A stretch of 57,404 nt of DNA, the filler included, from Hydrolagus affinis (lineage: Eukaryota): the NCBI GenBank assembly GCA_012026655.1. It is 3 parts of 3 records of this genome, joined end to end, with 100 filler letters (N's around TTAATTAATTAA, not from the genome) between each part and the next. Parts side by side here need not be neighbours in the genome. Positions count along the whole stretch, not along the records: positions 27,379 to 40,675 come from JAAILG010020738.1; 2 more parts are not named here. The stretch is one strand, 5' to 3'. The notes beneath the pieces are model-generated. The model did no database searches and had not been told where the DNA came from. It saw only the letters and a list, made by a program, of their open reading frames with translations. Of the stretch, positions 27,379 through 40,675 are shown piece after piece. Every line of letters begins with the position of its first letter. The stretch's first letter is position 1. A program made the translations under genes and the position numbers.

Positions 27379-27680
27379 ACTAGTGAAAACAGCATTTGCT
27401 CAGAGCAAGGGTTGGGTCGCGCCTCAACCTACGGTATTAACAGGACTGTAGCCGACAAATTCACTCAAGCATAAAAGGCAGCTCTAAAGCATCTGGATTT
27501 TTCTTTGCCATTAAAAACCTACAGTTTTTTTTAAATGGAAAGAATTATAATGTGATAACAAGAACATGTTGATTTCTCCTTTTACGGCCTCTATTACCCC
27601 CCCCCCCCCCCCACACACACCCCATCAGCAACCAAACAAGGCAACCAGACAGGTTGCTATAAAGCGAGTTACTTCACTAC

Positions 27681-27744
27681 CTGCCGAGCAGAAGGGACCA
27701 CAGGACATCAGAGCCCACACCAGGACACACAGGTTGACTGCCAT
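27681..27744 (-). CDS. Orphan leader exon of an unidentified secreted or membrane protein gene
   Basis: gccATGG Kozak context; MAVNLCVLVWALMSCGPFCSA + phase-1 donor (cag|gtagtg); 64 nt. The rest of the gene would run into the spacer. Confidence 0.55.
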
Positions 27745-28486
27745 GGCTGGAAGCTTTACCCTAAGACACTGTCGCCGGCCGACTCTGATCGGAGCCATTT
27801 TAAACTGTGCCCGAAATTACTGTAATAAAGAAAAAGTCGCATTTCAGTTTCACTTTCTTTTTGGATGTAAGCAGACAACCCAGCAACCCGAGCTGTACAG
27901 CCAGCTCCCCCCGCTGGTCTCAGCCTCACAGCCATCATCCAACAAATGCACTAGTCACAGAATTTAAATAGGGGTGTGGGGGGGATGCTTGATGCTATCT
28001 TTCTGCATGTTAGGCATATATAACATCATTATTTTAATTGAGACATTTTACATTCCAATGGTGTTATATTCTGCATTTTTTTTTAAAGAAGAAACAAATT
28101 TTCTCTTCCAGATTATCGTCCGGTATCTATATATGCTCAGATGTTGCTTTTTTAAAAAAAAATTGTTGGCACACTTAACACACGTCCCTCCATTCCAGGA
28201 ACCCACAGTCTTAGCCTGTGAGACAATTTTCTCTTACAATTTAAATTCACGCTGAATTATGGAAATTTCTTATACTCGATCATAATTTTGAAGTCACTTT
28301 TCTGCAACTCCACAAAACCAATCTGGTTTCCAGATTAAGATTTACAGAATGGCAGGCTAAATCTAGGTTTTATTTTCAGGACATGGAATTGGATTTGACA
28401 GCCTCACCTTTCACGAGTAGCTCTCTGTTCTTTTTGTACGGTGATATAAACAGTCCAGGTGTACAGTTCTCTCTCTTCCAGCTGTC

Positions 28487-28700
28487 AATCAATCAATCAA
28501 TCAATCAAAACATTTATTAAACCCTTTCACCTCGAGAGGACGTCCCAAGGCGCTGTACAGTTAGGTAGGGACAAGAGCAGGTGGGGAGGGGTTGGGGCAG
28601 GATGAAAAAGAGCAGGAAAATTGACTATATTTGTGGGCGAAACGCGGCAGCCAAATTGCACACAGCAGTGTCCCACAAACAGTCACTGAAATGGGGCCAG
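28487..28700 (-). mobile_element. SINE variant with (TTGA)n tail; near-identical copy at ~31745-31985
   Basis: Both read (tcaa)n..aaaccctttcac..gagaggacgtcccaagg..gtacagttaggtagggacaagagcagg..aaagagcaggaaaattgact..tgtgggcgaaa. Confidence 0.75.
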
Positions 28701-29507
28701 GGGAGAAAGGCGGAAAAGAGAGCAAGGGGAGAGAGGGAGGGAATGGTGGGGTGGGGGTTAAGTCAGGGAGGAAGAGAGTATATTTGGCTGATAAAGGAAG
28801 GCATTTCTTTCCAATAATTCATGAACAAAAATTTTCACTCCAAGTCTTGTAAATGTATGATTCCCTCCATTGAATGCGTACACTCTAGACTTTCTTTAAA
28901 CCTATTTGACAATAGTCATATTAACAGTTGTGAAAGTGGTATCAAGTTCTGATTTATCATAACTGGTTACTTTGCATTCCAGGAGAACTTCTTCATTTGC
29001 CAACACTTTCTTTGTGGAGAGAAAGTTCTCAAAATCTAAGACACATCTACAGTACATAAATAAAATATTTCAAGCAGAATATTAGTGGCATTAAACATCT
29101 TTCATGGGAGTTTAAAGAGATGCGATTTTAGGTAGGATTTAAAGAGAAAGAGAGTTGATATGGAATTGTAGGGGGAGGGAGATCCACAGGTTGGGGGTAT
29201 TGGAATGAAAGCTCGATTAACGATGTGGAGAAAGCCTAGATTACCAGAGCGGAGGAAGTGGGGGGAAAAATAGAGTAAAAGATCAGAGTGATAAAAGGGT
29301 TGCAAGGAGTGGAAAGATTTGTAGGTTACGACAAGAACCTTAAAATTGATCCACTGTGAAATGGGGGAGCCAGTGGAGACTCGAAAGGGCTGGAGGGATG
29401 GGTGTGTGGAGTTTGTTGCAAATTATGTTGCAGGAAGCACATTTTTGGATGAGTTGGGGCTTGTCAAGGGTGATGCATGGGAGACCGGTGAGGAGTGAGT
29501 TAGAATA

Positions 29508-29901
29508 TTATTATAATAATAATCCTTGCATTTGATATAGTGCTTTTCACATCTTCTAGTTGCCTTAAAGCGCTTCACAGAATAATAAGAATAACACTTG
29601 CACTTGATAAAGCGCTTTTCACATCTTCTAGATGTCTCAAAATGCTTCACAGAATATACTGTAAAGTGAATTAACTATCTACTTGTGGGTGAAATGCAGC
29701 AGCCAATTGCACACAGCAGTATTCCACAAACAGTCGTGGATTGAAATGACCAATTGTATTATTGTTTTTTTTTTGAGGGATTATTATGCATGTAAGTGAA
29801 GTAAGGAAACTTGCCCAAGATTTCGCCCTGCTCTGCCTGGATTCGAACATTGGTCTCGCGCTTGTACGGCGAGTGCTCTAATCACCGAACTACAAGACTC
29901 C
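29508..29901 (-). mobile_element. Full-length tRNA-headed SINE with tandemly duplicated tail
   Basis: Head ggagtcttgtagttcggtgattagagcactcgcc..gttcgaatcc; the tail segment is present twice. Confidence 0.8.
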
Positions 29902-30344
29902 ACGATATACAAATATGTATGAAAATATCACAGACAGATTAAGGTTGTAAAGTACTATATATAAATATGTATTGTAGTTTTGGAATGACAAGGCAACATT
30001 ACAAGGCATTTAACATTGACAGCAATATAAATGAATCAAACAGAAATTATACAATAAGCTTTGCTGAAAAACATCATTCTCGAAACTGCCTTCCTAAACA
30101 AAACAAATTTCAAGTTAAATTTGCCTGATTTCAAATCAGTGATCAAATCGTCAAAACACCCACTCAAAGGGTATTACATTATGACATCAATCATATTTGA
30201 AAATAATCATTGACTTCCAATACATTATATTTTAATCACTATGATTCATATGTACAGTAGCACATTTTACATACTCAGCAGCGTATATGAAAATATTATG
30301 GGCCACATATTTCATTGTTTTTTAAGTTCCAATGAATTGTCCCA

Positions 30345-30532
30345 ACCTGGCTTATTAGCATTCATGTTTCTGAATCAGAAGGTCGCCGGGTCAAGTTCTA
30401 TTTTGGGGCTTTGAGTTCATGGTGTCAGCTGACATGCCTGTACAGTGTGGGGCCAGTGTTGCATCGATAGAGTTTGTGTTCTTTGGATAAGATGTTAAAC
30501 TGGGTTTCATCCACCTGTTCAATTGGATGTTC
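30345..30532 (+). mobile_element. Old DeuSINE (SacSINE1/AmnSINE-like) fragment
   Basis: tctgaatcagaaggtcgccgggtcaag..gctgacatgcctgtacagtg..ctttggataagatgttaaac resembles the Deu domain as I recall it (gctgacactccagtgcagtac..gtctttcggatgagacgttaaac). Confidence 0.6.
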
Positions 30533-30544
30533 AATAATAATTCT

Positions 30545-31078
30545 TGCATTTAATACAATGCATTGAGCAGTCTCAAAGTGCTTTACATACTGCCGCCCGC
30601 ATACTCACCCACACCAAGCTTCGCTTCCCCATTACTCCAGTCCTTGCCACACTTCACTGGCTCCCTATCCCAGAGAGGATTGACTTCAAGATCCTCACCC
30701 TTGTTTTCAAGTCACTCTACTCCTCTGCACCCACCCTATCTCTCTGATCTCCTCTCTCCCCAAACCAGCACCCGCTGTCTTCGCTCCACCAGATCTGGCC
30801 TCCTCCATGTTCCCCGAATCCTCCGCTCCACCCTCGGCAGCCGTGTCTTCAGCCACCACTCCCCAAGGCTCTGGAACGCCCTTCCTCACTCCCTTCACCT
30901 CACCCCCTCTCTTCCCAGTTTCAGGTCCCAGCTGAAGACCTTTCTCTTCGACCGCACCTTTGGTCACCTTTCTACCCCTGCCCCTAGCTTGTTCCCGGGA
31001 TCCGCTACTGTGAAGCGCTCTGAGACACCGTCCAGCGTGGAGGGCGCTATATAAATCAAAGTTGTTGTTGTTGTTGTT
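30545..31078 (+). mobile_element. L2 LINE 3' end
   Basis: AARILTHTKLRFPITPVLATLHWLPIPERIDFKILTLVFKSL; ends ggcgctatataaatcaaa(gtt)n. Confidence 0.92.
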
Positions 31079-31743
31079 TACATGATTTACTGTTGAGTGC
31101 AGCAACTGTGTATTTTGTAGGCAATTTAAAGATTCTGTGCTACTATGCAAAGAAAGAAGGGGGTTATTTGCTAGTGTCTTGGCCAATAATCCTCTGGTTA
31201 AAATTGATCATTCATTTCATGGAATCTTTGTGAACACAACAAAACCTTTGCTGAGTTAGGGGGGATGCTGCTATTTAAAGTTTGGAAGCTTCTGGTAAAA
31301 GGTACATTTGGAGTGTAGGCAATGTAACAGCTGTGGTGGAAAGCAGTCCTGGTCAGGGATCGGATGTGGGATAGGAAAGACAGCTGGAAATTGAACCTGA
31401 TGCCAAGATTGCATAAGGGTTCAGTAATTCTTAGGGAGTGGCCAGGGAGGTTGAAGAGGTCAGGGACGCAGGAAGGAAGACAATGATGGGAACCAAGGAG
31501 TATGGCTTCCATACTGTCATTGTTCAGCGGCAGGAAGTTTGTGATCATCCAAGTGTACTCGGTAATGTTTGGGATATCACAAGTACTTTATAAAATGAAT
31601 TTATCAATGTTTGTCACTCTGGACCTAATGGCCAGCTGTAAATTCAGTCTAAAACCCAATTAACTTGAGGATTTTTCCACTGAGGAACCCTGTATAGGTC
31701 AAGCTACAAAAAAAATTCTGAAATTCCATTCTTTGATATTTAT

Positions 31744-31806
<63 letters not shown>

Positions 31807-32329
31807 CTTACATTTATAAAACCCTTTCATGTCGAGAGGACATCCCAAGGTGCTGTACAGTTAGGTAGGGACAAGAGCAGGGGGAGGAGTCGGGGCAGGA
31901 TGGAAAAGAGCAGGAAAATTGACTGTAAATTTGTGGGCGAAATGCGGCAGCCAAATTGCGCACAGCAGTGTCCCACAAACAATGTCATTTTATTGTTTAT
32001 TATGTTATCTTATTATATTATATACAATACCTTATACATAATACCTTTCAAATTAATAGTACAGTACACGCAAACTTGTTTGACACTGGCTGGGGATCCA
32101 ATCGGAAGTGGAAGACAAATGGGGTGAGGAGAGGAAAGATAATCGAAAGTGTGGTCAAAGAGCTAGATCTTGAATGAGGCGAAAGAGCAAGTAATTCAAA
32201 GGGTCACCAAAATTGAGTTCCGTTCAACTCACTGGGGTTTGCAGCACTAATGAAACCAAGCAAGGATGGAATGATGGGACGTCCTACTGATGTGAAAGGC
32301 ACTATACAAGTGTCGTTTTGTTGTTGTTA

Positions 32330-33000
32330 AAATGGTACCATTTACCTTATACTGTCTCTCCTCATTCTTCCTACCAAAAGGCAACACTTCGCATTTCTCG
32401 ACATTAAACCTCATCTGCCATGTTCCTGCCCATTTTACCAATCTGTCTAAGTCCTCTTGGAGTCTATCCTCCACATCATTTACTACATATCCTAGCTTAG
32501 TATCATCTGCTAATTTGGAAATTGTGCTCCCTATATCCAGGTCCAGATCTATATAGTTCAGAAAGAGCAGTGGTCCCAATACCGACCCCTGAGGGGCACC
32601 ACCACCAACAAAAAAAAATTGTATTTATAGAGCCACTTTCACATCACTACATATCTCCCTCCAGTCAGAAAAGCAATCGTTCACTACTACTCTCTGCTTT
32701 CTGTCTCCTAGCCAGTTCTGGATCTGCATTGCCACCATCCCTTTAATACTGTAGGCTTCTATTTTGTTTATAAATCCCTTGTGTGGCACTTTTGTCAAAT
32801 GCCTTTTGAAAATCCAGATAAACTACATTCACTGTTCTACCTGCACCCACCCTCTCAGTCACTTAATCCAAAAATTCTATTAGGTTTATCAGACACGATC
32901 TGCCTTTAAAAAAATCCATGTTGACTATCCTTTATTAAACCATATTTTCTAAGTGAGAATTTATATTGTCCCGCATTATAGTCTCCAGATGTTTCCCTGG
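32330..33000 (-). mobile_element. CR1 LINE RT fragment
   Basis: GPLLFLNYID..STISKLADDTKLG..LQEDLDRLVKWAGTWQMRFNVEKC. Confidence 0.88.
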
Positions 33001-33172
33001 TACTGACGTTGGGTTGATTGCCATTTCCACCCTTCATTACAAAAACATTAAGATTAATAAAACCAGATTTGATTCAATGAAATCATGGTGTTAGTGAAAA
33101 GTGGGGCTATGAAATCAGGGGTGGTGTAGAATCAAGGAGGGATTCGGTATGTGAAAGAAAGGATTTGGTAGA

Positions 33173-34908
33173 TTAAGAGAGAGATTCTGTGAAAACAGAG
33201 TTTGAATCAATGGAACCACATTCAGGTTCAACGGAAACAGAACTTGGTTCAATGGGGGCAGATTTAGGGTCAAGCACAGGAGGTTCAGGATCTGTGGGAG
33301 TTAATTTAGGTTTACGTTTAGTGGGAGTTGGTTTAGGTTCAGTGGGAGGTGGTTTAGGATTAGTGGGAGTTGGTTTAGGGACAGCAGGAGGTGGGTTACG
33401 GTCAGTGGGAAGTGGTTTATGGTCTGTGGGAGATGGTTTAGGGGCAGTGGGAGATGGTTTAGGGGCAGCAGGGGGTGGTTTATGGTCAGTGGGAGGTGGT
33501 TTTGGGTCTGTGGGAGGTGGTTTGGAGTCAGTGGGAGGTACTTTAGGGTCAGTGAGAGTTAGTTTAGGGTCAGTGGGAGGTGGTTTAGGGTCATTTAGAG
33601 TTGGTTTAGGGTCAGTGGGAGGTGGTTTAGGGTCTGTGGGAGGTAGTTTACGGTCAGTGGGAGGTGGTTTATGGTCAGTGGGAGGTGGTTTAGGGTCTGT
33701 GGGAGGTGGTTTATGGTCAGTGGGAGGTGGTTTAGGGGCAGCAGGAGGTGGTTTATGGTCAGTGGGAGGTGGTTTGGGGTCTGTGGGAGGTGGTTTAGGG
33801 TCAGTGAGAGGTGGTTTAGGGTCAATGGGAGGTAGTTTTTGGTCAGTGGGAGTCGGTTGAGGGTCAGTGGGAGGTGGTTTAGGGGCAGCAGGAGGTGGGT
33901 TATGGTCAGTGGGAAGTGGTTTATGGTCTGTGGGAGGTGGTTTAGGGGCAGTGGGAGGTGGTTTATGGTCAGTGGGAGGTGGTTTAGGGTCATTTAGAGT
34001 TGGTTTAGGGTCAGTGGGAGGTGGTTTAAGGTCTGTGGAAGGTAGATTATGGTCAGTGGGAGGTGGTTTATGGTCAGGGGGAGGTCGTTTAGGGGCAGCA
34101 GGAGGTGGTTTATGGTCAATGGGAGGTGGTTTAGGTTCAGTGGGAAGTGGGTTAGGGTCAGTGAGAGTTGGTTTAGAGTCAGTGGGAGGTGGTTTAGAAT
34201 CAGTGGGAGATGGTTTAGGGTCAATGGGAGGTAGTTTCGGGTCAGTGGGAGTTGGTTGAGGGTCAGTGGGAGGTGGTTTAGGGGCAGCAGGAGGAGGTTT
34301 ATGGTCTGTGGGAGGCGGTTTAGGGTCAGTGAGAGTTGGTTTGGAGTCAGTGGGAGGTGGTTTAGGATCATTTAGAGTTGGTTTAGGGTCAGTGAGAGTT
34401 AGTTTAGGGTCAATGGGAGGTAGTTTATGGTCAGTGGGATTTGGTTTAGGGCTAGTGGGAGGCGGGTTAGGGTCAATGGGAGTTGATTGAGGGTCAGTGG
34501 GAGTTGGTTGAGTATCAGTTGGAGTTGTTTGAGCGTCTGTGGGAGTTGGTTGAGAGTCAGTTGGAGTTGGTTTAGGGACAACGGGAAGTGGTCTATGGTC
34601 AGCGGGAGTTTGTTGAAGGTCAGTGGAAGTTGGTTTAGGGTCAGTTGGAGTTTCATGAGGGTCAGTAAGAAGTGGTTTAGGGGCAGTGAAAAGTGGTGGT
34701 TTTGGGGCAGTGGAAAGTGGTGGTTTAGGGACAGTGGAAAGTGTTGGTTTAGGGGCAGTGGAAAGTGGTTTAAGGGGAGTGGCAAGTTCATCAGAAGTAA
34801 TGCAAAATTGTTTGCATTCAATGGGTGTTTGCTGAGGTTCATCAGTTCCAGACTTGGATTCAATGGAATCATCATGCTTGACTGGATTGTATTCACACTT
34901 TGCTCCAT
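33173..34908 (-). CDS. NCR3LG1: B7-H6-like gene: last exon, 578-aa proline-rich repeat tail
   Basis: Polypyrimidine acceptor (ttgtttcattcaattag); phase 1 matches the TM exon donor; stop-free for 1.7 kb to the stop at 33173-33175. Confidence 0.75.
33248..34660 (-). repeat. Coding 21-bp minisatellite (consensus plus strand GTCAGTGGGAGGTGGTTTAGG; PKPPPTD)
   Basis: 64 consecutive in-register heptads plus 3 more after a 2-codon insert; preceded by ~4 octads (PKPPLSTA). Confidence 0.95.
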
Positions 34909-35339
34909 CTAATTGAATGAAACAAGTGAAGCAAAAAAAACAATTAATTTGTTTTAAAAATATATCAAAAATAAATATCATTTTGAAATGCAGTACCAAT
35001 TCATGCATGATGATATAAAAAAGGAACTCAGAATAATGCTTTAGGATGGACCAAGGCAAGAGAACATGGGTTTAAAATTGAAATGGCAATTTCAGGACAT
35101 ACCCCAGGAAGTTTTTTTGTATGGATAAGATAATTAATGGTTCGGACAGTTTGTCAGAAAAGGTGGCTGAGGCAAAGACACTGATCTCATTTAAATGTTC
35201 GTAGCATCATGGAATCTTATAATAATGATAATCCTTACATTTTGTATAGCGCTTTCCATGTCTTGGGATGTCCTCCTGATGTGAAAGGCGCTATACAAAT
35301 GTAATTTTGTTGTTGTTGTATAGCCAGGAATATTCAGCT

Positions 35340-35940
35340 CCCATTCTTGCCTATGTTTGAGCCAAGTCTCCGTTGCTGTACTATATCATATCCCCCTGCG
35401 GCAACTTGAGCCTGCAGCTCACCTTAGTATTCAGTACAGAGTACCGCTTTGTGAGTGCCACACTTTCAGGGGATTTCTGCACTGCCCATCCCCTCTTCCT
35501 ACCATGCCGGGTTGTCACCCAGTCACTCTCCCTCTGAACCCTCGGTGGCTGTTGGGTGACCACCTCCTGAAATGTTTGATCCATGAAATCCTCAGCCTCC
35601 CATATACAATGGAGTGACTCCAGTCTCCCTTCGAGCTCAGAAATCTTGAGCTCAAGCTCAAGCAGCCGGAAGCACTTCCTGTATACATGATTGTCTAGGT
35701 TGCACAAAGCATCCTGGGGTTCCTACATGCCACATGCCCCGGTTCTCAGCTGCCCAGCCATGTTCACAGACATGTTTTAAATTATTGTCAATATTATATA
35801 ATATTGTATATATTTTACAACTTCGCACCTACTTCCCCCCTCTGCACCTAATTCCCACTCTCACCCAATTCCTTCTCACTCTGGTCTTGCCTCACTCCGG
35901 TCGCAGCTCACTCTAATCGGCTCTCAACTCGCCATTCGGT
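35340..35940 (-). mobile_element. CR1 LINE 5'/ORF1 fragment
   Basis: CRKC..LLELELKISELEGRLESL..W..V..R..NRYS-type CR1 ORF1 zinc-finger/leucine-zipper region (ORF 35381-35707). Confidence 0.78.
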
Positions 35941-36110
35941 TCTCAGCTCACTGAATTGCAATGTTATGTGCAATTCAGCAGGAAATATAAATCAAGATCC
36001 ACACTATTCTACCTCTTGAAAATAATTTTTAGATTCTTTTTCAGCAGAGATTTCAAAGCATTTATCAACTAAATAACATCTGTATTGTTTCTTCATGAAG
36101 AACATCTTAC

Positions 36111-36185
36111 CTTTACAATAAATCCAAATGGCTACAAATAAGGCACACACCAGCGGAACACCAACACCTCCAACTATTGCTGGAA
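36111..36185 (-). CDS. NCR3LG1: B7-H6-like gene: transmembrane exon
   Basis: aaacccag acceptor, aag|gtaaga donor, 75 nt, phase 1-1. VPAIVGGVGVPLVCALFVAIWIYCK. Confidence 0.82.
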
Positions 36186-37287
36186 CTGGGTTTGTAACAA
36201 GAAAAGATGAAACTTAGATATGATTTGTGCCACGGCAATAAAAAAAAGTCAGGTTTTAACTATCCACTCTCATTAATTATCTTCAATATCTCAAAAACCC
36301 ATTGTGGTATCACTTTTTCTCTCATTCTGGGCACAAGAACCCTGGCTGACCAAATGATTTCCCTACTGAGGTCAATATCATTTTATTACAATAACATTAA
36401 TCCCAAATTGAGAAACATTTACAAAATGTAGAACACTTTTATGTGTCCTGTATTTCCATTATTTTTCCTTATTATTTCCCTGCCTCCAACACCAAGCAGG
36501 GAATGAGGGAGAAAAGGTGTGGGAGGTGATTGTAGGCATGGTCAAAGAATAGGTTTACAGGAATGTTTCAAAAGACAAAGAAGTTGGGGGATTTAGGGAG
36601 GGACTTCAATGGGATGGAGTGAGCAGCCAGGAAGATTGAGGTATGAGAACCAATGGTGAGGAGGCACTGGTGAGAGCTGAGAAGATTGGCTGTCATTTTG
36701 TTCAAGTTGAGTTGAAGAAAATGACCAATTCAGGAGGTAGATTTGAGGATTATGAGCATATACATAAAAATGTAGTCCATGAGCGTGGATGACATCAATA
36801 AGAAGGGACATGTAGATGAGGGAGATGGGGGAAATGAAGGGACTGAAGATAGAGTCTAAGGTTTGTTCTGGGTTACTTTCTGGGGGAAAAGGAGAAACAA
36901 CTTGAAGAAATGAAACAGAGATAATAGTTCAGATAGGACTAGAATAATCAGGAGAGTCCATCCCATGAAGGTGAATGAGAGAGGAGAGATGATCAAAGAG
37001 GATTGAATGGTCGACAGTATAAAAAACAGCAAAGAAAGATTAAGGAAGACAAGTGACTAAAACTACATAATTTGCATCTCAAAGGTGAGCTGTTTGGATT
37101 CTGTGAGAAGGATAGAAGCTGGACTACTTTATATTAGTACCTTGTATTGGTGTAGGACGTAAAATCTATAAACAGATTTAATTTCTCTACACTCATTCAT
37201 TTATCCCTGGTTTAAGTGAGAACAAGCAATGATAACTGTAAATCAAAATTTAAGTGAAAATTACATTACTCTCAAAATAGAGCTTAC

Positions 37288-37614
37288 CATAATTTGATTT
37301 TTGAAATGATATTTCAGCTGTAATGGTATCAGGAAATATTCCGTACTTCACAGTACATTTATATTTGGCATTGTCATCGATTACTTCATCCTCTGATGAT
37401 ACAACATTCAATGTACTGAAAACATTAAACGTCCCATCTTTGTTTCTAACAGGAGCTTCAGTTGAAGTATTACTTAAAACATGTTCTGTTTTTCCTTGTG
37501 ATGTTTTGAACCAACTTATCTCAAGTTTCTCGGGATGAAATCTGCTAACTTCACATCTGATTGACCTCGATGAACCCTTGTTACCAGCAGTGGACAAGCT
37601 GATCTCTGGCCGAG
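37288..37614 (-). CDS. NCR3LG1: B7-H6-like gene: C1-set exon
   Basis: 327 nt, phase 1-1. RCEVSRFHPEKLEISW..PVRNKDGTFNVFSTL..YKCTV matches the B7-H6 C1 pattern (CE.SGFYP..I.I.W..N.DGTFNV.S.L). Confidence 0.9.
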
Positions 37615-37889
37615 CTGTGGAGAAGAAAAACGGGTTATGCAAGATGAGAATGAGTTGGAAGGAGGCAGGGTAGAGAATATTTACTAGGATTATACCTGGA
37701 GTTAATGGTTTGACCTATGAGACCAGAGGAAATGTGACTTTGTTTGTTGGAACATAAAATGGTGAGAAGTGACCTGATAAGAGATCCTTAAAATTATGAG
37801 GGGATGTGATAGAGTAAATAATCGGGAGAAATTATTTCCACTGGTTAATGAGTCAGTAACTAGAGGGCATAAATTTTAAGTTAGTAAAT

Positions 37890-38845
37890 GAGCAAATGGG
37901 AGGCTGTAAGAGGAGCTATAGAATCTTTATTAAAATTATTGTTTGATACCCCAAAGTGTATGTGAAAACTGGAATAATCTTGATTGATCTTAAGGAATGC
38001 AAGACAGAGAGTTTGGACCAAATGGAGTGAGGTTTGTGTTTGTGAGTTTTATGATTGTGTTGATGAAGACTTGGTGGATAGGTGTTATTCCTTTCTTTAT
38101 TTGGAATGATGGTGTATAACAGTCTATCTCAAGTCAATAAAATGGACAATGTGTTGATGTAAGAGACTACGAAGAAGACCTGAAGTCAACATTCACAAGA
38201 TCAGAAATGTGTATAGCTTCAAGTTAACCTGACACTGTCCTGATTAATTGTTGACTCTTGGTGCCTTCCAGTCTGCTTGGATGAGATCTTCAAAGGATAT
38301 TACGATGTGAAGGTGTCAAGAAAGGACAATTAACTGTCGAATTGAACTCTTCAAATATGGTATCAGAGGAACTCCAACTTCCTGAGATTAAAACCCTGAT
38401 AAACCTTGGGGCATCCCATGTGTGGTAACCCGATTGGATGGATCAGTTCAGGAATATGAGTGAACAACAAACTGTGAACTTTGATTGGGTAGAATGGCCT
38501 CTGCCTACACCTTATTTCATCATCACGTTTCCAAATTTGGGGTATAAAAGAATAAAGCAAATGTTAAGAATTTGGACACCATTGGGATACCATTGGGACA
38601 CTGTTGAGACAGTATCAGTCATTGTGAGATAGTGTATCCTATGGTCCATGTGGGTTCATAGCTAAACAATTAGCCAAAGGATTATTGGTGTGTTGGTGTC
38701 CCCAGCGAAGGTCGAGGTGAGCCTGCCCTGAATCATCTTCTGCAGTTGTAACAGTTTAATAACCGTCTTTATAATTAATAAATTAACCCTTTGATTTATC
38801 CATTGCTTCTGTACTATCTTACCTCAGGGTCGTACAACATAAAAA
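37890..38845. mobile_element. ~0.9-kb LTR-like insertion interrupting a CR1 3'UTR fragment
   Basis: CR1 sequence stops near 37886 and resumes near 38846. The insert has tataaaag and aataaa motifs and ends ..caaca. I could not resolve a clean TSD. Confidence 0.4.
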
Positions 38846-39287
38846 CCCTCCAAGGCTAGAAGAAATGATTTCATGCACAGAGTTATTAAGATATGGAATG
38901 CCCTGCCAGGTATACTGTACTTCAAAAGGGAACCAGACATAGCCTACAAAGGGTCCCCTACAGGGATACGGGAAAAGAGTAGGTAAATGGGGCTGAAAGG
39001 ATTGTTCTTGAAGGAGCTGGCACAACACAATGCGGTATTTGCAATGGCAAAAAATTCTATGGTTCCAAATTCCAATAAATCCATCAAATGCTGGAGTTAC
39101 ACAGAATGATATGGTATGGAAACAATTCAGCCCAGCTAGTCCATGTCAAACATTGCTGGATTAATTAGATGAAATTATTTTCTCTTTCATTGACAGGTGC
39201 ACTGGAACAATAAATTTAGCTATACTAAGTAGAATTTCAGGCCGTGAGATGTGTTTTGGCAGCCTTGCCATCTTTTGACAGCCTTAC

Positions 39288-39638
39288 CTATCAGCTGCAG
39301 CTCTGCACTCTTTTCTTCACTTTCTGGGGTAATATAAACAGTGCAGGTGTATACACCACTCTCCTCCATCTGTATAGATGGTAGATAAAGTGAGGCATTT
39401 CCTTCCAGTATTTCTTCATCAAAGATTTTTGCTCCAGGTCTTGTTATTGTATGCTTTCCTCCAGTGAATACATACAAGTTTTTTTTTATTCCACTTGAGT
39501 AAACCACGTTCCATGTAACAGCTACATGTTTGATTTCAAAGTCTGATTTATCGTAACCAGTTACTTTACAATTGAGGAGAACATCTGTATTTGCCAAAAC
39601 TTTCTTTGGGGAGTGAAATATCTCCAAATCCAAGGCAC
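39288..39638 (-). CDS. NCR3LG1: B7-H6-like gene: V-set exon (leader exon not found, probably beyond the spacer)
   Basis: 351 nt, phase 1-1. RPGA..GNASLYLPSIQMEESGVYTCTVYITP matches the B7-H6 V motif RPGA..[26 protein letters not shown] as I recall it. Confidence 0.9.
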
Positions 39639-40675
39639 CTATATACAGTACAAACAAAATATTTCAAACAGAATTAGTGGGCAATACACATCTTTCATAA
39701 GCACGATAGTCATTTAAAGTGATAAGATTTTGCTCACGAAGAGTATATTCTGTAAAGCCGCCTCAACGACATGATAATGCGCTAAATCAAATACAAGGGT
39801 TGTTATTATTATTATTTCAAGTGAGATTTACTTGCTTTACTCAGCAAACACTGGCCTGCCTCATGTATCCTGCCCTCTCTGCCCTTTCAGCTATTTCTGC
39901 TCTGGCACTCCCAGAATACCCACCTTCTCACTCCTTGTAACTGCAGAGTGTAACTAATGTGAAAGCTGAGATCCAATTAGCACACAAACAACCTTACTTT
40001 ATAAAACTCTACAACCATGACAACACTTCATTCAGGGTGCTGGCAAACCCCCTGGATATAATATGAATGCCTCCTTAACTTTCTTTTCTTAAAAAAAGAC
40101 TAGACATTAAAAACAAATTAACAATACAATTGATCTCTTTACATTATTTAGCTGAGGGAGAAATGAAACACAAAATGCACACAAAGTTAAGATCTTTATC
40201 TCTGACTTGGAAATTCCAACCATTCATGGCATTATCCAGGCTTTGAAGTCTTTTTCATTAAACCTCAAATCTATGCTTCGACCCATTCAGATTTCCCTAA
40301 CTCCACAATATTTCTCATTTCCATCACCACCACCTATTGGCGACAGAAAGCCTCATGTATACATTTACCATGTCTACAGCAACTCTGCTCACTCTACGGG
40401 CTTTCTTGACAAAGGAACGCTCTGTATTTTGCATTTCAAGGCGGGTTTCCCATTGCAAATGTCTGAAGTTACAGTACCGGTTATAATGGTAACTTGAGAT
40501 ATATTTGCAAGTGATGGAGAACAAACAAAGGTGAAGAAAAATATTTCTGTTTGAAATAATAATTATCAAATGGACAACAAAATTGTAAATGCTAAACCAC
40601 TATCAAATGCAATATTATAGTTTGCTCTAAAGGCTTCTTACTCTATCATGGGTACATCGTTTACACTCACATCAG

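Follow-up and report, generated by a model that had tools for sequence, protein, structure and literature searches.

The window analysed is a 57,404-nt stretch of Hydrolagus affinis DNA, and the locus described here lies on the minus strand, in the 13-kb piece that comes from JAAILG010020738.1 and ends at position 40675. A four-exon model was obtained, encoding in turn an IgV domain, an IgC1 domain, a transmembrane (TM) segment and a long proline-rich tail. Every exon is in phase 1 with AG/GT borders, and the four when joined give a V-C1-TM-tail model of ~830 codons with no frameshift or internal stop. Database searches were run exon by exon. The features, in the direction of transcription, are:

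40143-40223, minus strand: candidate leader-like exon, with an ATG and a hydrophobic core like that of the Callorhinchus milii signal peptide
39288-39638, minus strand: IgV exon, 351 nt, phase 1 to 1, AG/GT borders, Pfam V-set E = 2.1e-8
37288-37614, minus strand: IgC1 exon, 327 nt, phase 1 to 1, Pfam C1-set E = 6.5e-12
36111-36185, minus strand: TM exon, 75 nt, phase 1 to 1, the sole hydrophobic segment in the model
33173-34908, minus strand: last coding exon, 1736 nt up to the stop, a predicted cytoplasmic tail of 578 codons plus TAA (33175-33173), acceptor and stop conserved in C. milii
34778-34906, minus strand: unique juxtamembrane segment of 43 aa, with YNPV at 34891-34880 (from translation)
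34682-34777, minus strand: four octad units of 24 nt (Tandem Repeats Finder period-24 row and translation)
33317-34681, minus strand: 65 heptad units of 21 nt each, register unbroken (Tandem Repeats Finder and translation)
33176-33316, minus strand: non-heptad C-terminal end of 47 aa, acidic/Ser, rich in E, S and P
32931-32936, minus strand: AATAAA, a candidate polyadenylation signal ~240 nt past the stop, read from sequence

The single TM segment spans model residues 225-255 (Kyte-Doolittle >1.6), and the tail is C-terminal to it. The predicted junction between the TM exon and the last exon (36111>34908) is in phase, with no intervening exon in the window model. The original prediction had the V, C1, TM and last exons splicing in phase, with the tail following the TM and comprising a YNPV motif, about four octads, ~64 uninterrupted heptads and an acidic/Ser end. 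This description holds throughout, including the unbroken register, except that the heptads number 65. Rfam and tRNA scans of the 13-kb piece gave no matches. Just downstream of the gene there is a further V exon of this family, in a decayed state.

Judged by sequence and by the modelled fold of the C. milii orthologue, the ectodomain is B7-H6-like. The top PDB match of the V exon was human B7-H6 (7.8e-10), and the C1 exon matched B7-H6 in the PDB over residues 6-92 (9.5e-9, near-top rank). A family profile gave 1.2e-45 for B7-H6 against 7e-25 for CD276 (B7-H3), and in a Foldseek search with the model of the C. milii orthologue, ranks 1-7 were all B7-H6 (TM-score 0.67-0.71). B7-H6 is thus ahead by V-exon sequence, family profile and orthologue fold, in line with the proposal of a B7-H6-like ligand. 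Human B7-H6 (NCR3LG1), the ligand of NKp30, is likewise a type I protein with an IgV + IgC1 ectodomain. Induced by stress, it allows abnormal cells to be recognised by NK cells, and for a B7 family member it has an unusually long cytoplasmic tail. According to one report (PMC11476788), that tail resembles a Gag polyprotein and contains ITIM-like, SH2-binding and SH3-binding motifs. The window tail, by contrast, is a tandem heptad array in which no Gag or other Pfam domain was found (628-aa ORF, E ≤ 0.1), in line with the earlier proposal of a tail acquired independently of the Gag-derived human one; its only non-Ig database matches were low-complexity Pro-rich proteins.

Tandem Repeats Finder reported two arrays: one with a 21-nt period at 33309-34772, with 69.3 copies and 78% matches, and one with a 24-nt period at 34672-34787. 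The commonest heptad is PKPPPTD, with 13 exact copies, and the pattern of P at positions 1, 3 and 5, K at 2, T at 6 and D at 7 is dominant in both the H. affinis and C. milii genomes. Proline makes up 35% of the tail; in the array P accounts for 35% and T for 14%. K and D alternate, giving the tail 68 basic and 71 acidic residues. Mean unit-to-unit identity was ~79% at every lag, and the lag analysis of the array showed local block duplications but no repeat of higher order. A wrap-around alignment to a 21-mer with a linear gap cost was discarded, since it broke 3-nt insertions into single bases.

The window locus is collinear with C. milii scaffold MU249848.1, with a non-coding identity of 80-87%. 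The C. milii counterpart is LOC103175083, whose old model (XP_007886036.1, 610 aa) was named 'uncharacterized' and whose current product is 804 aa, corresponding to the first 300 residues of P0001 followed by the entire 504-codon last exon. The two genes share the V-C1-TM-tail architecture, the last-exon acceptor, the PKPPPTD heptads, a KRK stretch, the EPECGSIDSNS end and the stop. In both genomes the last exon reads without interruption from its acceptor to the stop codon. Comparison with C. milii L002 shows that the acceptor is conserved together with its pyrimidine tract; the stop and 3'UTR are conserved too. At the C-terminal EPECGSIDSNS motif a 39-nt coding stretch is identical in C. milii, with one 21-nt in-frame indel nearby. 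The TM exon has a conserved donor, an acceptor shifted by 6 nt and one 18-nt deletion, both changes being in frame. Within the 43-aa juxtamembrane segment only the E-Y neighbourhood aligns. Particular to C. milii are a 72-nt extra cytoplasmic exon between the TM and last exons (no counterpart was found in the window intron), a longer TM exon, units of 5 and 9 residues, and ~15 membrane-proximal Y-ending units carrying 9 PPxY motifs. Particular to the window are the four octads, the 43-aa unique segment with its YNPV, and H-K and A-A unit variants.

Non-coding gaps between the two genomes occur at ~1 indel per 100 nt, and just 1 of 18 was a multiple of 3. In contrast, the V and C1 exons had no gaps in 224 codons, and the TM and last exons differed only by changes of 6, 18 and 21 nt and by whole units of 15, 24 or 27 nt. 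That the exon indels are always multiples of three argues that the array has been maintained as coding sequence.

Homologues of the leader-V-C1-TM part (E 1e-44 to 1e-61) were found, for example, in Heterodontus (XP_067902348.1), Chiloscyllium (XP_043561673.1), C. milii (XP_042197542.1) and Cetorhinus (XP_078404004.1, named 'NCR3LG1-like' by NCBI). Most elasmobranch and other C. milii B7-H6-like proteins likewise carry long tandem-repeat tails after the TM; their tails differ, however, in being acidic E/Q/D/K/G-rich repeats or ~170-aa modules, with at least four unrelated repeat types among them. An Ig part joined to a proline-rich tail was found in none of the 150 best representatives except C. 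milii P0001, and word-based protein searches returned P0001 alone. Look-ups of exact products gave no entry for P0001, P0005 or P0014, nor for three start variants of the window's tail ORF. Going by these matches, the proline heptads appear limited to this lineage among the cartilaginous-fish relatives compared. P-rich tails, for which the original prediction suggested a search among chondrichthyan relatives, are thus present in the C. milii counterpart, whereas the long tails of the other relatives are acidic. The literature search, which extended to full text, gave no description of the heptad tail; Flajnik et al. 2012 (B7H6 evolution) and Ohta and Flajnik 2015 were outside the search. The claim that the architecture is undescribed therefore stands for the papers searched but is weakened in that XP_007886036.1 was already public and long repetitive tails are common.

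Our preferred reading, to which we give a probability of roughly 60%, is that the gene is a holocephalan member of the B7-H6 (NCR3LG1) family and the counterpart of LOC103175083, with a tail that is an in-frame array and may act as a scaffold. The product would be a type I membrane protein with IgV and IgC1 domains, one TM helix and a ~580-residue tail from a single last exon. The tail would have arisen mostly as a 21-nt tandem array within coding sequence. Because the unit length is divisible by three and few of its codons are prone to become stops, slippage or unequal exchange would alter copy number and leave the frame unbroken, and selection would have kept that frame intact in two lineages. 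In the AlphaFold model of the C. milii orthologue, a signal helix is followed by two domains of beta-sandwich fold and a TM helix, after which there is no secondary structure, with pLDDT <50 over most of the tail; the tail is predicted to be non-globular, extended and polyproline-II biased. It could serve as a long flexible intracellular spacer and scaffold, offering ~23 K-x-x-P-x-x-P (class I SH3-type) sites to adaptors once an NKp30-like receptor engages the ectodomain. By regex count only, the window has 23 class I SH3-type motifs, [RK]xxPxxP, against 27 for C. milii. PPPP runs and [FLWY]PPPP (the profilin/EVH1 ligand type) are absent in the window, where the longest run is PPP, found 30 times.

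It is also possible, though we do not favour it, that the tail is coding yet has no specific partners, being a tolerated, largely neutral low-complexity expansion (disordered filler or spacer) that shows the same tendency as the acidic tails of the relatives. Differences among the units fall 56/65/46 over the three codon positions, with no third-position excess, and 123 are non-synonymous against 29 synonymous, so residue identity inside the array is barely constrained. The two species differ in their unit variants and in copy number. PPxY (WW) motifs number 0 in the window tail against the 9 of C. milii, so that at least a PPxY docking function is not conserved. The variety of unrelated repeat types among the relatives' tails fits neutral filler as well. 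Neutral filler accounts less readily for a frame held over ~500-580 codons in two lineages despite many indels, for the dominance of one heptad pattern in both species and for the conserved C-terminal motif.

A less likely alternative is that the window copy has recently been disabled or is unexpressed, with its body intact and a usable first exon missing. A search of 39639-40675, up to the piece edge, found no signal-peptide exon in a matching phase. A tblastn search with residues 3-14 of C. milii P0001 matched the leader-like exon at 40193-40158 with 67% identity; the sole strong GT donor of this exon, at 40142, is phase 0, whereas the V exon requires phase 1, and the codon homologous to the C. 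milii start is not ATG. The predicted type I topology combines the one TM in the window with the signal helix seen in the C. milii orthologue, the leader-like exon being out of phase with V. The V domain has 88/116 residues identical to P0001 (76%) and the C1 domain 81/108 (75%), both without gaps, and these values set against a non-coding identity of ~85% indicate a divergence close to neutral. The decayed V exon downstream indicates that gene death does occur in this cluster. However, neutral substitution at 7.5-15% predicts 2.8-5.1 stops in V + C1 + TM where 0 were observed, and over the 830 codons neutral drift with the non-coding indel rate predicts several stops or frameshifts. The real leader may, moreover, sit past the piece edge, ~1 kb upstream of the V exon.

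We consider it improbable that the main transcript reads through the TM donor or takes another 3' end, which would give a short-tailed protein and leave the repeat as an intronic or UTR minisatellite. The sequence after the donor is ~90% conserved and is open for 37 codons here and ~18 in C. milii. The heptad frame has 0 internal stops in 578 codons, and the remaining five frames have 6, 10, 13, 53 and 120; other frames of the array can, however, run far without a stop (336 codons in C. milii), and a substitution-only simulation of the array gave P(no stop) = 0.31. The open heptad frame by itself is therefore not beyond chance. The intrinsic coding tests on the array (stop simulation, codon positions and synonymous/non-synonymous differences) were uninformative and were not counted as support, which comes from the comparison with C. 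milii. There, the conserved acceptor, the shared stop and the in-frame exon indels set against 1/18 in non-coding sequence all oppose read-through, and the heptad array is CDS in two NCBI annotation releases of C. milii.

Skipping of the symmetric TM exon, which as a phase 1 to 1 exon of 75 nt would keep the frame and give a secreted V-C1 protein with the Pro/Thr repeat as an extracellular O-glycosylated mucin-like stalk, is very improbable: the P and T content of the array is as in secreted PT linkers, and the tail-matching P0053, P0095 and P0128 look secreted or surface-located, judged by sequence, with Pro/Thr-rich linker or mucin-like repeats, but the TM exon is conserved and in frame, its splice sites are conserved too, and the annotated C. 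milii product contains the TM. Provided the TM exon is included, the repeat is C-terminal to the sole TM and the Ig domains are N-terminal, which is not the arrangement of an extracellular repeat.

Read as the intracellular tail of a B7-H6 family member, the array can be compared with the intracellular proline-rich repeat regions of the CD2 tail, titin PEVK, the RNA polymerase II CTD heptads and formin FH1. These lie in the cytoplasm as non-globular, proline-rich elements that serve for multivalent docking or as springs, and the RNA polymerase II CTD is a tandem heptad array too. The window array has no sequence relationship to any of them, however, and its unit is zwitterionic (K, D), without aromatics or Ser-Pro phospho-sites. 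To our knowledge, none of these repeats is joined to an Ig-superfamily ligand as a 65-unit array. Extracellular Pro/Thr linkers, mucin- and extensin-like repeats and bacterial TonB-type (E/K)P rods are similar in composition and in their short period, but they sit outside the cytoplasm, whereas the window array follows the sole TM of a predicted type I protein.

A broader and doubtful extension is that cartilaginous-fish B7-H6-like ligands use fast-evolving repeat tails as signalling or anchoring modules ('reverse signalling'); in holocephalans the module would be a polyampholyte rod of ~450 residues in polyproline-II form, bearing dozens of SH3-type sites. If so, titin PEVK and the Pol II CTD would have in this rod an intracellular, membrane-tethered counterpart, and nothing comparable is known to have been described for any immune ligand. 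Should the shark and chimaera tails be translated, B7-H6-like ligands of the oldest jawed vertebrates would have acquired very long repetitive tails repeatedly, providing a natural series of tail variants for comparison, and a proline-heptad array kept in frame would point to a selected intracellular role of the ligand in anchoring, sorting or reverse signalling. Relatives are at present annotated as 'retinitis pigmentosa 1-like 1', 'myb-like protein X' or 'midasin-like', owing to the low complexity of their tails, and this annotation needs cleaning.

The gene model comprises four exons on the minus strand of the piece 27379-40675, all bounded by AG/GT and all of phase 1, as established by reading the DNA and by script.

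Features of the gene and its repeat array
39638-39288, minus strand: V exon, 351 nt, phase 1, AG/GT borders
37614-37288, minus strand: C1 exon, 327 nt, phase 1, AG/GT borders
36185-36111, minus strand: TM exon, 75 nt, phase 1, AG/GT borders
34908 to the TAA at 33175-33173, minus strand: last exon, phase 1
32931-32936, minus strand: AATAAA, candidate polyadenylation signal
33309-34772: 21-nt array, 69.3 copies with 78% matches (Tandem Repeats Finder)
34672-34787: short 24-nt array adjoining the 21-nt array (Tandem Repeats Finder)
33173-35059: 628-codon ORF spanning the 21-nt and 24-nt arrays
39220-39657: IgV-like ORF (Pfam V-set, 2.1e-8)
37250-37642: IgC1-like ORF (Pfam C1-set, 6.5e-12)

In translation, the TM is followed by a unique stretch of 43 residues with YNPV in it, then by four octads, 65 heptads and a 47-residue acidic and Ser-rich end. 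The heptads span 33317-34681 in unbroken register, and Pfam found no domain in the 628-codon ORF. The original prediction described these exons and this tail accurately, except that it gave ~64 heptads where translation and script count 65. The feature is real, with the observation confirmed and its interpretation partly supported. The gene is a B7-H6-family ligand whose cytoplasmic tail is a lineage-specific coding heptad array.

Searched against proteins, the tail gave one Ig-containing match, XP_007886036.1, the 610-aa 'uncharacterized protein LOC103175083' of Callorhinchus milii, with signal peptide, V, C1 and TM. Proline heptads ending in Y or in D make up the tail of this protein, which shares the C-terminal motif of the tail in the window; its ungapped identity is 76% to the window's V exon and 75% to the C1 exon. 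The C. milii locus used for comparison (L002, scaffold MU249848.1) was reached via two further family members of that species and begins inside the LOC103175083 gene, whose region on the scaffold is about 5,631,600-5,645,000 (L002 1-4945 and upstream). Collinearity of the window with L002 runs through the pre-TM intron (87% identity), the TM exon and the last exon, and onwards through the 3'UTR (80%), intergenic DNA (82-86%) and a decayed downstream V-like exon. This collinearity argues that the window holds the orthologous locus in another holocephalan, an old segmental duplicate being less likely. At least five V-C1 genes of the family lie within ~145 kb of the same C. milii scaffold (about 5.60-5.75 Mb; L002 and a further locus, L001), with products of 422, 710, 717, 804 and 1107 aa, the 1107-aa one having five C1-set domains.

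The heptad frame contains no stops in 578 codons, and the remaining frames contain 6 to 120. Very few single changes can turn the majority unit into a stop codon, and a substitution-only simulation left the array stop-free in 31% of runs. Differences between units are distributed 56/65/46 over the three codon positions, without a third-position excess, and number 123 non-synonymous versus 29 synonymous. In C. milii, the array also reads open over 336 codons in a frame other than that of the heptads. By itself, the open frame in the window is not clearly beyond chance and, since long ORFs are cheap in such repeats, the case for coding must rest on comparison.

The window and C. milii share a conserved last-exon acceptor and pyrimidine tract, and in C. 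milii the heptad frame likewise runs open from acceptor to stop (504 codons). The TAA and the sequence following it are also conserved, and the C-terminal motif is encoded by 39 nt that do not differ at all between the two. In the current C. milii annotation, the product has 804 residues and its end coincides with the shared stop; because 804 residues equal the first 300 of the old model plus the entire last exon, the array is counted as CDS in both annotation releases, which are predictions and not proof. The clearest contrast between coding and non-coding sequence comes from indels. The non-coding alignment of 1,739 bases has 18 internal gaps, only one a multiple of three, whereas the 224 codons of V and C1 have none, against about 7 expected at the non-coding gap density. 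The TM exon differs from that of C. milii by an acceptor moved 6 nt and one 18-nt deletion, the C-terminal end by 21 nt, and the off-register units in either array are all of 15, 24 or 27 nt. Neutral substitution at 7.5-15% predicts 2.8-5.1 stops in V, C1 and TM together, with a probability of finding none of 0.05 to 0.004. Selection has clearly acted on the reading frame through most of the period since these lineages diverged, even as its residues change quickly.

V and C1 have diverged between the window and C. milii almost as fast as non-coding DNA, which fits a fast-evolving immune ligand and also relaxed constraint. Only one exon in the piece (40223-40143) looks like a leader. It is similar to the signal peptide of C. 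milii, but its donor is phase 0 and it reads ATA at the position of the C. milii start; either the true first exon lies past the edge of the piece or the start was lost in this copy. Between its TM and tail exons, C. milii carries a further exon of 72 nt to which the window has no counterpart, and the TM-to-tail intron in the window is half the length of that in C. milii; the predicted direct 36111>34908 junction is in phase. The first ~40 nt of intron just 3' of the TM donor (36070-36110, minus strand; L002 1018-1060) are about 90% conserved, and read-through past the donor stays open for 37 codons in the window and for about 18 in C. milii, so that a read-through isoform with a short tail is possible, as is a splicing element. 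The same intron of the window holds a 108-aa ORF (35381-35707, minus strand) with a coiled-coil-like start; it lacks a Pfam match, has no equivalent in the intron of C. milii and is probably part of an inserted repeat.

The first PDB match of the V exon is human B7-H6 (7.8e-10), with B7-H3 behind it, and the C1 exon matches B7-H6 over its whole length (9.5e-9). Used as query in an exhaustive search, the C. milii protein gave 759 relatives, the closest being V-C1-TM proteins of sharks, rays and C. milii, one of them named 'NCR3LG1-like'. A profile of twelve of these (A4) matched human B7-H6 at 1.2e-45, covering both domains, and CD276 at 7e-25. In the AlphaFold model of the C. milii protein, a signal helix precedes two beta-sandwich domains and a TM helix; what follows has no secondary structure, with pLDDT under 50 for the greater part of the tail. 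The model's best seven PDB fold matches are all B7-H6. The proposed likeness of the ectodomain is borne out by PDB sequence, profile and fold matches, and the label 'B7-H6-like' is well supported.

Most close cartilaginous-fish relatives carry several hundred to more than 1000 residues of tandem repeats after the TM. These differ in kind from the proline heptads: some are acidic E/Q/D/K units about 27-60 residues long, a C. milii paralogue has G/T/E/N/K-rich ones, and others are ~170-residue modules present in up to seven copies. A check for P-rich tails on an Ig part found LOC103175083 alone among the 150 best representatives of the 759 relatives. Long repetitive tails are thus a family-wide habit, already in databases under misleading names; among those 150, proline heptads are confined to this holocephalan gene. 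The view that the architecture was undescribed stands in that no paper on the heptad tail or on family-wide repetitive tails was found in a literature search that did not extend to the main B7H6 evolution papers, but the C. milii version is already annotated as CDS in databases. The human B7-H6 tail has been described as Gag-polyprotein-like, with ITIM-like, SH2- and SH3-binding motifs (PMC11476788); as the original prediction held, the tail in the window is different, with nothing of that kind detectable by Pfam.

Six shark and ray relatives (P0006, P0009, P0012, P0016, P0020 and P0021) have 1-7 copies of the ~170-residue module after the TM. It contains Cys and conserved LFHW, IPC and STVLKVTA stretches, belongs to no Pfam family, and may be an undescribed folded cytoplasmic-side domain or the product of chimeric gene models. 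B7-H6-like isoforms of Chiloscyllium plagiosum bear the NCBI names 'retinitis pigmentosa 1-like 1 protein', 'myb-like protein X', 'midasin-like' and 'ribosome-binding protein 1-like', which look like artefacts of low-complexity tails.

P makes up 35.5% of the tail in the window, T 14%, K 11% and D 10%. Basic residues number 68 and acidic ones 71; there is a single Tyr, and hydrophobic segments are absent. Its K-P bonds would resist trypsin. P-rich sequence of such composition should be non-globular with a strong polyproline-II bias; 455 residues fully extended would reach ~140 nm, though the actual chain is probably a semi-flexible coil. The expected dozens of PxxP sites are present as a motif count (55), together with 23 [RK]xxPxxP and 1 PxxPx[RK]; a scan for PPxY, PPPP and NPxY gave 0 for each. 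The C. milii tail has 27 [RK]xxPxxP and 9 PPxY, compared with 23 and 0 in the window. On this motif basis, putative WW docking is lineage-specific, and docking of profilin or EVH1 to the window tail is unlikely. The best reading, to which we give a probability of about one in three, is that the tail would serve as a long intracellular spacer and scaffold offering many weak SH3-type sites. The main alternative is that it is tolerated filler without specific partners.

Downstream of the gene, a second V-like exon of the family (28425-29066, minus strand) has about 49% identity with the V domain of C. milii; a ~290-nt insertion breaks it, and it is no longer open. The collinear place in C. milii (L002 7741-8083) holds a likewise decayed V exon, so the pair looks like an old shared pseudogene remnant of a tandem cluster. 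A 110-aa ORF fragment (32247-32579, minus strand) with a weak RVT_1 match (Pfam E=0.0015, below cut-off) is probably retroelement debris. A ~320-nt element, at 29581-29903 and 29513-29656, is 79-84% identical to at least 7 places in L001 and L002 and is a dispersed, SINE-like repeat; in the window, it is adjoined by a 72-nt tandem duplication.
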